Of a stretch of 64,000 nucleotides of DNA, positions 6,051 through 11,344 are shown piece after piece. Under the pieces are notes generated by a model. It had not been told where the DNA came from. It searched no databases and saw only the letters and a program-made list of their open reading frames with translations. The DNA is taken from NCBI GenBank assembly GCA_021613535.1, contig CP075495.1:8556001-8620000 (forward strand), read 5' to 3'. Source of the DNA: Adineta vaga (Eukaryota > Animalia > Rotifera). How positions within the stretch are numbered: position 1 is the first letter of the stretch; every line of letters starts with the position of its first letter. A program made the position numbers and the translations under genes.

Positions 6051-7830
6051 TCAATTGATTTTCTCTTATTTGTTGTAATCTTGTTTAGATTAATAATTAT
6101 TAATTTATCAGTTTTCTGCTGTTGTGATGGTTTATTCGTGAATAAGTTATTTAATGTGCTTGTTTCTTTTTTTTTATTTCTCTGTCTTGTTTTCAATGGA
6201 CAACTCAGAGGCCGTTATAATGTGGTGCATTGATGTGATTTTTGCTTTCTGTTATTTCCTTTCTTTCCTTTGATCTGATATTCGAACAGTTTTTGTCTTG
6301 CAAAATTTTCAGTATTTATTCATCTACTCAAGAATTTGTTTCGATACAAGAGAAAACTTCTAGTTTACAATCTTGTTTTTTGATAAGTTATCAATGTCGA
6401 CTAGAAAAAGATGATAAATAAAAGCTTTTGGCTTTCGTGATATTAGAAATAAAAGCTTATTGACTAAAAACAAACAAATTTTTTTCAAGTATTCAATATA
6501 GATAAATTCTAATGTTGTTCTCATTTAACTGAAATTAGATCAGAATAGGGATCAAATGAAATTTCATCTATTATTTTTCAATACATGAAGCAAAGACAAT
6601 GTTTCTATCAAAATCAAATGAATATTTAATAGTCATCGAAACTTTCTCTCTCGATTACCGTCGTGTTCAAATATTTATCTATATAAAACTGAATGATTAC
6701 TAGTAGTTTAGTAATAATGTTTTTTTTCTATTTCTTATGAACATGTATTCAATATAACATTGATTTTTCTCTTGCTAGAAATAACTGTCTGATCAAAAAC
6801 AAATCTCATTGATTTATTTTATCATATTTTATTGATAATCTTACAATCTAAACCAATGAATTCGTTCGATGAATCTACATTAATATGATAGGAAACTGTC
6901 ATCGATGTATGATCATTCTTTACTTTAATTTACTATGTTCTTCGTCAATAGCCGTTCGATCGTTCTTTCAGAAAATAATATTCAATGCCGACATGCATAG
7001 AGATGCATGTTAATTTTCTCAAGAGAACAGACTTGTATCATAGGAAATAAACAAGAGGCTTTTTTTTCTTTGGGAATTACTAAGTTGTATGTAGTTCTGT
7101 TTTTTACAAATGTTAATTAATATTCTGCACCCTAGTATTGTGAACAATTCTACCGACTTTTCCATTTCTTGTTAACTATTTTTATCCTAATATCTTGTAT
7201 GCTATAATTAGTTTAAATTCTTCAATGAGTATGGTTAACTTTAGTTTATTCGATAAAAGCGTGCCCAAAAAGAATACTTTCGGAATGAAAATATTTACAT
7301 AAGTGTCACGTATGACTTTCCGTAATGAAACAGTAAGACACTGAATTGTCCTACAAAAAATAATCGTGCTATATAAATAGTCCTACTAATTATCTGCACA
7401 GCTTGCTTCTGTTCTTGTTAAGATCATTCGTGATTATAGCTATGGAAGTGATTCTAAGAAACAGTGCTTCTATCTAGTAAACCGGTAATACGAAATCATG
7501 ATTCTGATCTGCGACAAGTTATGTAGAATTCTGAAAGGTTTCTGTGAGACAAAACTACATATTGATTTAGTCATATTACATGAACATTAATTGAATTGAA
7601 GCTGAAAGAAAAGTTACATTATTCATTCGTTTTTAATCGTATCATATATCAGAATTGGCTTCTTTTTTCTTGTTAGAATAATAAATATTAGTTAATAATA
7701 ATTATCATTATTGTTAAATTAAAAACAGATGAAGAATATCTCGTTAAACATAGTATTTTATTTTATAACCGAATACTAGCGAAAAATCAGAAGGAAAAGA
7801 AAGAAGTCTGATATAGATGAATATCCTCTA

Positions 7831-8640
7831 TTATGTACCTAGACCCATTAAATGTTGAATATAAGTTTCCCAAGTTGGTTCGGATAGATTGATTTGCTTA
7901 CAAACATCCGCATATTTTTCACGTGTATCAATCACATATTTCACTGCTAATTCACCCTTATCAATATATGTTTGCATGATTGGATCATCTTTTGAAGAGA
8001 ACTAGTTTAAAAACAAAATAATTCAGAGTATTTTAAATTATTTTTACTTACACTTTCTAATTCTGCTCGGGCATTTGATACAAATTGCTTGATAGCATCA
8101 ATACCAACAGGAAAATTTGTTTTTTGACTATGATATAAAAAATAGAATAGAATGGATGCCGTTGATATGAGACGAAGAATTTCATCAGAAACTAAACAGA
8201 TCTTTCTAGGAAAAAGAACGAAAGACATAAATACATTCAAAATACTTGATAAATCTAAGCCTTTGGTATTTAGATGACGTTTGATCTGTTCAAAATCAAC
8301 TTGAAAGAAATCACCTAATGTACTTGTTGCTGGAAAAGATCCATCCTATTGAAAGAAAGATGCGAATCTATTTTAAAAAGTTTCCAATAATCTACATTAT
8401 TTTGTTGTTGAAAGATTCCATTAACGAGAGAATCAGTCAGTGGAGTTTCAATAATTGATCGTAAAGGAACATCTAAAATACATACATATGTCATCAAGAT
8501 CTTATCAATAACAAAATGATTTATTCACCATTTACATCAGAATCATTTGTTCTTCTCTAATAACAATAAATCAGCATAAGACATATCAGTTTACCAATTA
8601 GATAATTAACTAGATTACTTACTGATGCTTCGCTTGCCAT
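7831..8640 (-). CDS. 177-aa stand-alone protein resembling the PARP4 (VPARP) C-terminal MVP-interacting (MINT/INT) domain
   Basis: Six exons (8640-8623, 8556-8529, 8472-8396, 8345-8246, 8191-8052, 8001-7831) joined by 50-66 nt GT-AG introns give an open frame: MASEASRRTNDSDVNDVPLRSIIETPLTDSLVNGIFQQQNNDGSFPATSTLGDFFQVDFEQIKRHLNTKGLDLSISDEILRLISTASILFYF...ELAVKYVIDTREKYADVCKQINLSEPTWETYIQHLMGLGT*. The family call is from recalled similarity to the human PARP4 C-terminus. Confidence 0.75.
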
Positions 8641-9315
8641 AATGTTAGCTCACGTGAGTGACTAGCTGCTTGTAGTCAGATCGATAGTGACGACACAGTG
8701 AATGAGACGTGTCGAGCGAATTGAGGCTTAGTATTTTCTTTCTCTATCCCTTCTTTCTTCATTTCTCTGCTCTCGACTCGTTTTTTCCTCACTTGATGGA
8801 CGAATAGCAACTGCCGATGTTAGAGTCGTAGTCTTTGCCTTCATCATCAACGACACATCATCAGCAAAAAAAAATATATTTGAAATTATTCTTTCTTGTC
8901 TATTCTCTATATCTATTACCCTTTTCACATTGTACGCATCGACAATCTAACTGAAAATTTTGTCAAAAGCTAAAGAAGACGCATGGGAATAGCTGACGAG
9001 CAGTTCCTTTTCTAATTGATGTAACTATCTGTAATAAGCTTTTTTGCTTTCCCTCTATCATATTCAAGTATATTGTTTATTGTCATTCTTATACTTCGAA
9101 GGAGAATTCATGCGAAGAGAGAAATATTTTGTTTTAATAAAAGAAGTTGAAATCAATTACTGAAAATATATTCATATGTCATAATCGTCGGCAAAACTTA
9201 CTTATTTAATGAATTTTATTTTTTATTTTCCTTTTTTTTGCGAAAAGAGAAAAAGAAAAAAAGAGACGGATACCAAGAGGGAATACGTGAAAGTGTGTGA
9301 ATCAGCAAGAAAAGC

Positions 9316-9338
9316 ACACACACACACACACACACACA
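9316..9338. repeat. (CA)n microsatellite
   Basis: Direct run cacacacacacacacacacaca downstream of calmodulin. Confidence 0.9.
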
Positions 9339-9989
9339 GTTATTAAGAAGAAAAAAAAAGAAGATAGCCGACATCAAAAGTACAAGGGATGATATTTGTG
9401 TCATCGCTCTCGTGTGTTAAGTTATACACACATAATATGTATAAATAAAATGTTGTTCGTGAAAAAAGTTACTGTTATGGTTCAATGAATCTATGTATTT
9501 TTGTACTTGTGTTTTCGCTGTCGCTAACAAGTATATAGTAACAGAGGAAAAATACGAAAAAAAGATAATAGGTGTTGATGTAAAAATTTGTGTGAATATA
9601 TGATCCCTTTCATGGATAGATCTTCCAGTGAGAACCTGAATATGTAAAGGATGTAAAAAGAAAAACGAACAAACGAAAGGGTAGAAATAAGAAAGTTGAC
9701 ATCAACGAAACAAATGAAGAACGAAAAGAAACGTTTGATCAAAAAGTAGACAATACGCTAGTGTGTATGTGTGTGTGAGTTTGTGACAGAAAAAAAAGAA
9801 GATTTAGAAGAAGAAGAAGACAGGTATATGTTAGTGTTGGATAGTAAATAAGTTCTGAACAGAAAAGAAAGTCGAATAAAATGAAAAGAAAACGAAAATA
9901 GCATACACGCACACAACAATGATGACAAAAAAGAAAGAAAAAAAAATTAGTGTAATATGTAATGATGAATGATACGTCCTTGGTCACAA

Positions 9990-10669
9990 TCATTTTGAAG
10001 TCATCATTGTAACGAATTCTTCATAATTAACTTGACCATCTAGAAGAAAAACAAAATTTTATTTTTAATAAAATAAAATTACAATCTTTAGTAAATATAT
10101 AATATACCTCCATCGATATCTGCTTCACGGATCATTTCATCAACTTCTTCATCCGTCAATTTTTCTCCCAAATTTGTCATTACATGACTAGTAAAAATAA
10201 AATCGACATCGAATCATTATATTCAATCTAAGTAACAAACCGAAGTTCTGCTGCTGATATAAATCCATTTCCATCTTTGTCAAATACACGGAATGCTTCG
10301 CGAATTTCTTCTTCACTATCAGTATCTTTCATTTTACGCGCCATCATTGTCAAAAATTCAGGGAAATCAATTGTACCATTACCTAAATGTCTCATTGAAT
10401 TTAATCATCATTTTACACATGAACAACATACCATCAGCATCTACTTCATTGATCATATCTTGCAATTCAGCTTCAGTTGGATTTTGCCCTAAACTTCTCA
10501 TGACAGTACCTAGAAAATCGCCGAAAGATAGATCAATATAAATGATTTTCTTTGTCTCATTGAACAAACCTAATTCTTTAGTAGTAATGGTTCCATCTCC
10601 ATCTTTATCGAAAAGCGAGAATGCTTCTTTAAATTCAGCAATTTGTTCTTCAGTTAATTGATCAGCCAT
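9990..10669 (-). CDS. CALM: Calmodulin, multi-exon
   Basis: [34 protein letters not shown]|[26 protein letters not shown]|[19 protein letters not shown]...[15 protein letters not shown]. Confidence 0.99.
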
Positions 10670-11344
10670 TTCACTTCAATCTTTTGGATTAATAATATAC
10701 ACTCCTACACACAAAAAATCTGAAGAAAAAAAGATAGTACTAACCAAAAACAACAACAATAATAACAACATTCACTTGACAACATTAACTAAAACAAAAC
10801 AAAAAGCATAGCAAAAAAAAAGCATAGAATGATAAAGATGTCGCTTATAAATTGAAATTATTTTATTTTGAAAATCTTCAATAAAAAGATATTATCGAGT
10901 GAAATAAATTACTCGCGAATTATTTTATTCAAGAAAATAAATAACAACCATAGTACATGTCTAAATAACCTCTATGAACCAATCATTTGTCAATATATAA
11001 CTGATTATTCTTTTTCAGCTGGTAGAGAACGAACAAAACAAAGAGAAAGAACGAGAAAATGAGTATTATTTTAGTGGTGAGAGAGCTGGCTGTTTGGTTA
11101 GTTAGTGGGTGTGTAGGTGTTGCAATTGCTCCTTGCTCTACCGCACGACAGAAAAAAGGTGAACATCAACAAGTTTTCATTTTTCTGTACTTTCAGATCG
11201 CCGGGAATTAAGAATTATCTGTTGGCGAGAAGACGCCAGCATCTGGGAGTGTGAGTGAGAGAGGTCTTGGTTTTAAATAAAAAAACAATAAATTCTGAAC
11301 GGCACGCGTCATATTTTTTCTTTCAAACTTATACAACACTCTCA

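Follow-up and report, generated by a model that had tools for sequence, protein, structure and literature searches.

A Stand-Alone Gene for a PARP4 MINT/MVPID-Type Domain in the Bdelloid Rotifer Adineta vaga

Gene Structure and Transcription

We analyzed a stretch of 64,000 nucleotides (nt) from the rotifer Adineta vaga (contig C2:8556001-8620000; called the window throughout the paper), which is AT-rich with a GC content of ~30%. On its minus strand, positions 8640-7831 carry a small gene whose product, here named P0001, resembles the C-terminal MINT/MVPID domain of the vault resident PARP4. The gene consists of six exons separated by five GT-AG introns of 66, 56, 50, 54, and 50 nt, in that order, and its coding sequence of 534 nt specifies 177 amino acids (aa). 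The translation of the spliced model is letter for letter identical to I4U23_008432, a hypothetical protein of Adineta vaga at NCBI. Exon 1 (8640-8623, minus strand like all following features) contains the ATG and five further codons (MASEAS) and ends at a phase 0 donor, GTAAGT; its joint to exon 2 (8556/8623) was seen in the sequencing runs X1 and X5 described below. Exon 2 (8556-8529, 28 nt) lies within a disordered N-terminal tail. Exon 3 (8472-8396, 77 nt) encodes helices 1-2 of the domain, and its end, QQQNN, precedes the DGSF motif. This motif, helices 3-4 and the loop between helices 4 and 5 (h4-h5 loop), the counterpart of the human S1614/K1618 loop, are encoded by exon 4 (8345-8246, 100 nt). 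Exon 5 (8191-8052, 140 nt) contributes the long invariant helix 5 (RLISTASILFYFLYHSQKT) and helix 6, and exon 6 (8001-7831, 168 nt coding plus TAA) helices 7-9 with the invariant residues C155, L160, W165, and Q170, which are common to PARP4 MINT domains. The 5' untranslated region (8641-8688) begins at a cDNA 5' end with a SMART-type adaptor and holds an in-frame TGA at 8652-8650, four codons ahead of the ATG. In the 3' untranslated region (7739-7830), AATAAA at 7762-7757 precedes the poly(A) junction, which lies near 7739. The next gene upstream, also on the minus strand, is calmodulin (9367-10669), whose ATG is at 10669. A preliminary description of the locus, made from the DNA sequence alone, had already proposed the six-exon splicing with a 177-aa open reading frame, the in-frame TGA and a complete calmodulin as the next upstream gene of this strand. 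The splicing was borne out by the identity to I4U23_008432 and by cDNA-derived joints, and both other features are present as described.

For the analysis of transcripts, Logan contigs from four runs (X1, X5, X6, X15) of four studies were aligned to positions 6500-11000 of the window. The run type RNA was a guess only, and the contigs were taken as cDNA-derived because the introns were spliced out. All five predicted splice joints were found in contigs of each of the four runs, with CT..AC ends on the plus strand. A contig of X5 ends in poly(T) before 7739, 18 nt beyond the AATAAA, and a contig of X6 (2013) has a loose end at 8688, marking a cDNA 5' end 48 nt ahead of the ATG. The letters at this end match what we take to be the Clontech SMART IV template-switch oligo. 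No spliced leader was present at this one adaptor-marked 5' end; an operon or a trans-splicing link with calmodulin had been considered and was rejected on this ground. Further contigs extend unspliced upstream to 8790, 8862, and 9190. The longest of them, from X15, has a spliced coding sequence followed by ~550 nt of unspliced upstream DNA (8626-9190) toward the calmodulin 3' end and stops at a CA/A-rich repeat (9210-9366); it may represent read-through or an upstream start. In the contigs of the four runs no joint from the small gene to any upstream exon was found, and the upstream calmodulin is covered by separate contigs ending near 9367. The own mRNA ends, the upstream in-frame stop and the lack of an upstream joint therefore indicate that the small protein is made alone. 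A BRCT-PARP-VIT-vWA body, as in a PARP4 orthologue, was not found N-terminal to the domain, with mRNA ends at ~8688 and 7739 and a protein of 177 aa. Thus, the view that a MINT-like domain is encoded here on its own, with no PARP4 exons ahead, is supported, and the gene is expressed as such.

Some differences between contigs and reference were observed in the coding sequence. All four runs had contigs with F54L (window position 8307), a change back to the family consensus. T164A (7875) was seen in two runs and S6A (8623-8625) also in two (X6, X15), with the joint 8556/8623 unchanged. These differences may be strain or allele variants or, at 8307, an error of the reference. Assuming a direct mapping of I4U23 to FUN names, the gene and its ohnologue (FUN_008432, FUN_025196) were not among the listed rows of the supplementary tables of the A. 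vaga stress transcriptome.

Homology to the PARP4 MINT/MVPID Domain

Orthologues of 177-192 aa with 66-81% identity to P0001 were found in Adineta ricciae, A. steineri, and five Rotaria species. Three alignments were employed for profile comparisons: A1 for the small family, A3 for the PARP4-type domains of Adineta and Rotaria, and A2 for both combined. Searching 1.84 billion representative proteins, A1 matched bdelloid proteins only. The long ones among them were matched at their PARP4 C-termini, in D. carnosus (P0031/P0065, 2098 aa, E 6.5e-25) and A. ricciae (P0050/P0079, 2063 aa, E 3e-6). The rotifer PARP4 proteins comprise BRCT (in the A. ricciae protein), PARP, VIT, and vWA domains, an Hsp70 substrate-binding-domain-like (Hsp70-SBD) piece and, at the end, a MINT-type domain. 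A direct comparison of A1 with A3 by hhalign gave 98.4% probability (E 8e-15) over 153 columns. Against the PDB, A3 alone matched human PARP4 residues 1574-1703 with E 3.4e-6 and A2 residues 1575-1707 (11jf_P/9bw6) with E 9.5e-10; addition of the small family hence improved the match over A3. The hidden Markov model alignment of residues 1575-1707 contained all the human strings that the preliminary description had cited (QTEDGFW, TPELG, FLKQKGI, LLDLIATMLVL, QYPSICPRLELG..WDSATKQLLGL), and the profile comparison with the PARP4 C-terminal domain that it had called for was significant.

When P0001 or A1 was compared to the 100-Mb genome of A. vaga, the sole non-self locus at E<1 was the last exon of the PARP4 gene on C3. 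Matches of the small family to the A. vaga PARP4 loci in tblastn were colinear, with 23-28% identity to the MINT domains there. None of the more than 20 other VIT (VWA5A-like) loci of A. vaga outside PARP4 was matched by the small-family profile. When single exons and ten family members were scanned against a Pfam library that lacked PF26156, no match emerged. Precomputed matches to PF26156 (PARP4 MVP-ID C-terminal domain) are on record for the orthologues P0007, P0009, P0010, and P0084 and none for P0001. In UniRef, several orthologues carry the label "PARP4 MVP-ID C-terminal domain-containing protein".

The AlphaFold (AF2) model of P0001 consists of nine helices, with a predicted local distance difference test (pLDDT) score of 85 and a predicted template modeling score of 0.83; residues 1-14 are disordered (pLDDT <50). 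Among 48,161 PDB chains, the top fold match was 9bw6_B, the human PARP4 MINT in the vault cage, with Z 10.4 and a root mean square deviation of 2.6 A. Here, 116 of 136 residues were superposed, model residues 26-177 on PARP4 1570-1708. According to the note of the alignment tool, Z values below ~13 can reflect a common arrangement in helical proteins, and for this reason the MINT identity rests on fold and profile jointly. An AlphaFold model of the PARP4-type MINT alignment, intended for calibration of the Z-score, reached a pLDDT of 51 and was not used. The second fold match was a flagellar doublet-microtubule protein of T. brucei (9e5c_4t, Z 8.6), and all other rows stayed below Z 6. Weaker matches such as 5jpm_B and 3pya_A are alpha/alpha-toroid domains (complement TED, terpene cyclases) with a Q-x-x-D-G-aromatic motif. 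A search of the ESM Atlas likewise returned alpha/alpha-toroid enzymes, with template modeling (TM) scores of up to 0.43. The matches to the T. brucei protein and to 5jpm_B and 3pya_A hint at a distant origin of the MINT fold.

Some results weigh against the assignment. The PDB sequence searches with P0001 alone or with A1 alone did not reach human PARP4; only profiles containing rotifer PARP4 C-termini did. A precomputed PF26156 match viewed in its genomic context was graded only "weak". Foldseek against the PDB did not list MINT and returned weak nuclear-receptor-like rows with TM <0.25. The structural comparison suggested in the preliminary description was therefore positive for the first rank of 9bw6_B and negative for Foldseek. 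Taking profile and fold together, P0001 is supported as a true homologue of the PARP4 MINT/MVPID domain.

Origin, Age, and Selection

Introns 3 and 4 of the small gene occupy positions of PARP4-gene introns, one exactly before DGSF and the other in the h4-h5 loop. At the latter, PARP4 genes and small gene differ by an indel of three residues, as a shift of the splice site would give. The shared intron positions therefore point to a partial duplication at the DNA level rather than a retrocopy. A. vaga possesses an ohnologue on C5 (P0006, I4U23_025196) with the same six exons of 18, 37, 77, 100, 140, and 177 nt. Between the two ohnologues, the ratio of nonsynonymous to synonymous substitutions (dN/dS, Nei-Gojobori) was 0.24 (dN 0.17, dS 0.71), and the small gene is under purifying selection, a point on which the preliminary description had asked for a comparison among relatives. 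In a maximum-likelihood tree, rooted at the midpoint only and with fragments left out, the members of the small family formed a single clade (100/100) at the end of a long stem, with 1.34 changes per site. Within this clade a C2-type and a C5-type are distinguished, and each of them is represented in Adineta as well as in Rotaria. Consequently, the gene predates the split of the two genera and the divergence of the ohnologues. No match came from outside the bdelloids at the sensitivity of the searches used. The gene is specific to bdelloids and precedes the genome duplication of this group. The identity between Adineta and Rotaria amounted to 73-79% for the small family versus 56-59% for PARP4's own MINT, and 66 columns of the small-family alignment are invariant.

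A fourth MINT locus of A. vaga at C6:12.945 Mb (C6:12945366-12946705, minus strand; locus L045 3367-4706) consists of an Hsp70-SBD piece and MINT. With in-frame stops and a deletion in its last exon, and with neither PARP nor VIT in the vicinity, this copy represents a part of the PARP4 3' end that was duplicated and then decayed, and it can usefully serve as a neutral control. Comparable arrangements were noticed in Rotaria: Rotaria sp. Silwood2 has two tandem cassettes of Hsp70-SBD and MINT (L042 5082-6593 and 9199-10663), and R. sordida has a 328-aa gene of this composition (P0047, L044 847-2342). None of the upstream DNA examined contained PARP4 N-terminal exons ahead of these Rotaria cassettes. 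Together with the C6:12.945 Mb copy they indicate that the PARP4 3' end was duplicated alone more than once.

From all these data we conclude with high confidence that P0001 is a stand-alone, all-helical MINT/MVPID paralogue, which arose by duplication of the 3' end of a bdelloid PARP4 gene before the genome duplication, gained two 5' exons and a promoter, and was kept in both ohnologues under purifying selection.

MVP and PARP4 Genes of A. vaga

The question whether the genome contains the major vault protein, MVP, was answered by seven MVP-like loci, six with an MVP_shoulder domain and one further Vault-repeat locus. Two divergent loci lie at C6:8.188-8.195 Mb, two further divergent ones at C3:8.228-8.235 Mb and the others at C3:17.984, C3:14.675, and C1:16.387 Mb. 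Five of the seven were checked at the contact positions discussed below. The locus at C1:16.387 Mb matched with the shoulder domain only and may be partial. PARP4 genes, recognized by adjoining PARP and VIT matches, are located at C1:10.17, C3:14.15, and C6:13.29 Mb. All three keep an intact 3' end with an Hsp70-SBD-like piece and MINT. TEP1_N was not found in the genome, a result which is uninformative since the motif is short. Across animals, PARP4 and vaults co-occur (PMC4245714). In A. vaga, five MVP genes are over-expressed after radiation and one of them also after rehydration (PMC10809525).

The Calmodulin Neighbor

A calmodulin gene directly upstream of the MINT gene and in the same orientation was found at both ohnologous loci of A. 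vaga, in R. magnacalcarata and in A. steineri (calmodulin at L031 ~6900-7756, L040 4010-4707, and L041 4304-5003). The genes flanking the pair are also conserved, with PurA and a BAZ1-like gene on one side and DnaJ on the other; coronin lies beyond DnaJ in A. steineri and in the A. vaga window. In the orthologous loci calmodulin is annotated as a separate 149-aa gene. Three public gene models from three other species (P0081, P0082, P0098) join residues 1-~135 of calmodulin to the MINT exons in frame, each with a junction of its own. In the A. vaga contigs of the four runs, which drop rare forms, no splice joint from calmodulin to MINT was found. The PARP4 gene on C6 contains in its linker a calmodulin-like piece with 72% identity to residues 2-60 (L030 6797-7036; C6:13297296-13297535), situated upstream of the Hsp70-SBD-like piece and MINT. 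This piece and the calmodulin next to the MINT gene may be parallel by chance.

A Possible Role in Vaults and Alternative Explanations

In humans, the isolated MINT domain (residues 1562-1724) is sufficient to bind MVP repeats 3-5; its helices 4-5 and 7-8 face MVP, and contacts are formed by S1614, K1618, Q1682, and R1689 of MINT and Q164, R169, Q172, and D214 of MVP (PMC12280208). By analogy, P0001 may be a natural non-catalytic vault-docking protein, and a vault function is plausible in the light of its sequence relationship. A decoy or a cargo adaptor, both suggested in the preliminary description, would be further putative roles. It is predicted to be a soluble all-helical protein with ~160 structured residues behind a disordered tail of 15 residues. 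Like the isolated human MINT, it would attach to MVP repeats 3-5 on the inside of the vault wall. With neither a catalytic nor a cargo domain, it would be a non-catalytic resident of the vault lumen and, in that position, would occupy or tune the sites at which the three PARP4 paralogues dock. The contacts involved would have to differ from the human ones and form a different, co-evolved interface. The role of a non-catalytic lumen resident which occupies or tunes PARP4 docking sites is suggested by homology, and we consider it possible, with a chance somewhat short of even.

Several observations argue against docking. At the positions of human S1614, K1618, Q1682, and R1689, P0001 has L73, S74, K150, and Q157, none of the four being identical, and the consensus of the small family is S, S, K, and Q/D, so that only S1614 is kept, in most members. 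The h4-h5 loop of P0001 is three residues shorter and acidic, while it is basic in human. On the side of MVP, none of the five A. vaga paralogues examined retains R169 or D214; G or K is found at the former position and S, C, or N at the latter. Lodwick et al. reported the PARP4-binding residues of MVP as vertebrate-only (PMC12280208). The long stem of the small family fits a change of partner, and the related helical domain of VWA5A is not known to bind vaults (PMC10450202). As for the two other MVP contact positions, Q164 is present in one A. vaga paralogue (R, Q, N, or K across the set) and Q172 in three (Q or E across the set).

These same observations lead to the most serious competing explanation, namely that P0001 descends from a PARP4 MINT and no longer binds MVP, or that the rotifer ancestor never did, and that its present role is that of a small helical module interacting with some other partner, much as the VWA5A tail may act. 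The stem length, the shortened and acidic loop that in human carries key contacts, the loss of human contact residues on both sides of the interface, and the vertebrate-only report all favor it, as do the same fold type in the T. brucei flagellar doublet protein and the similar domain in VWA5A (PMC10450202). However, the MINT domains of rotifer PARP4 also lack K1618 and R1689, which makes the loss of residues little specific to P0001. Moreover, the co-occurrence of PARP4 and vaults across animals, the expanded MVP set of A. vaga, and its response to radiation and rehydration speak against it. We consider a change of partner possible, with a chance somewhat lower than that of docking. A further reading takes exons 2-6 as serving also as the 3' exons of a calmodulin read-through transcript, the fusion carrying calmodulin to the target of MINT. 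It would account for the conserved order of the two genes at both A. vaga loci, in R. magnacalcarata and in A. steineri, for the fused models P0081, P0082, and P0098, and for the X15 contig that runs unspliced up to 9190; the donor that follows DGDGQ in calmodulin is phase 0, as is the exon 2 acceptor, and in parallel the C6 PARP4 has a calmodulin-like piece ahead of Hsp70-SBD and MINT. Nevertheless, contigs of the four runs contain no such joint, a cDNA 5' end was found at 8688, most annotations show separate genes of 149 aa and 177-184 aa, and three fused models with three junctions are what prediction artefacts would show. We regard a conjoined gene as improbable.

Two other explanations have very little probability. 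The preliminary description had considered P0001 as half of a split PARP4, with the catalytic part encoded elsewhere without MINT and both parts associating. Nothing beyond the stand-alone architecture speaks for this proposal, and it fails because all three PARP and VIT loci (C1:10.17, C3:14.15, and C6:13.29 Mb) retain their own Hsp70-SBD and MINT 3' end; in addition, the small family shares only 23-28% identity with the MINT domains of these loci. A split PARP4 was therefore rejected. Equally, a decaying remnant of a partial duplication, transcribed without function, could be imagined from the fact that partial PARP4 3' duplicates occur and one of them is a pseudogene. Yet both ohnologues have an intact reading frame and a conserved exon structure, as do the genes of at least seven species from two genera, and 66 family columns are invariant. 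The pseudogene reading was rejected on the basis of the dN/dS of 0.24.

Returning to vault docking, a far-reaching version would have the MINT-only protein compete with three decoy-laden PARP4 paralogues for sites on the expanded MVP set and thereby set the PARP4 content of vaults, for example after desiccation or radiation, maybe complemented by a calmodulin-MINT read-through fusion. P0001 would then be the first protein found in nature to regulate vault loading or to serve it as a cargo adaptor. On the present data we hold this scenario to be unlikely.

Significance and Comparison With Known Systems

The function of vaults is a long-standing open question, and PARP4 is among their few known residents. 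Excision of MINT is the means by which engineers load vaults; the same cut was made naturally in bdelloids and kept for long, in animals with expanded MVP and PARP4. If P0001 docks, it would offer a simple, genetically separable handle on PARP4 occupancy and a second, divergent MINT-MVP interface to set beside the human one. If it does not dock, the MINT fold would be a more general interaction module than its name implies. None of the papers searched describes a MINT/MVPID protein that stands alone in nature, or PARP4 domains in rotifers. The earlier statement that no stand-alone version had been described accordingly holds for the papers searched, with the reservation that UniRef already names some orthologues by the domain. 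The finding is a new architectural variant of a known domain, for which an automatic domain name already exists in the databases.

The only other human domain resembling MVPID is the C-terminal helical domain of VWA5A, with moderate likeness (Suskiewicz et al., PMC10450202). By this published description, to which our comparison is confined, it also has no equivalent of Arg1689 (PMC10450202), and it is attached to a VIT-vWA body. Human PARP4 (vPARP) MINT (~1562-1724; 9BW6, 9BW7, 11JF) shares with P0001 the all-helical fold of ~150 residues (Z 10.4), the order of the helices, the Q-x-x-D-G-aromatic motif, and conserved Cys, Leu, and Trp near the C-terminus. The human domain stands at the end of a BRCT-PARP-VIT-vWA protein, whereas P0001 stands alone, and their identity is only ~18%. 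The closest relatives in the same genome are the bdelloid PARP4 paralogues (P0079, P0065; loci on C1, C3, and C6), which have two introns in common with the small gene and match its family at an hhalign probability of 98.4%. In contrast to P0001, they measure 2060-2100 aa and include catalytic and ITIH-like parts, and their MINT evolves faster; between helices 6 and 7, P0001 has an insertion of 14 residues relative to the PARP4 MINT of Adineta and Rotaria. The Rotaria genes of Hsp70-SBD and MINT and the pseudogene at C6:12.945 Mb likewise derive from duplication of only the 3' part of PARP4, and no PARP, VIT, or vWA exons were found close to them. However, they are younger, have PARP4-type sequence and retain the Hsp70-SBD, and the A. 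vaga copy is broken. The engineered INT/mINT tag is fused to cargo, whereas P0001 has only its 15-residue tail and cannot alone deliver fused cargo. Nevertheless, both are isolated domains and self-sufficient folded units, and the mammalian one binds MVP alone (PMC12280208).

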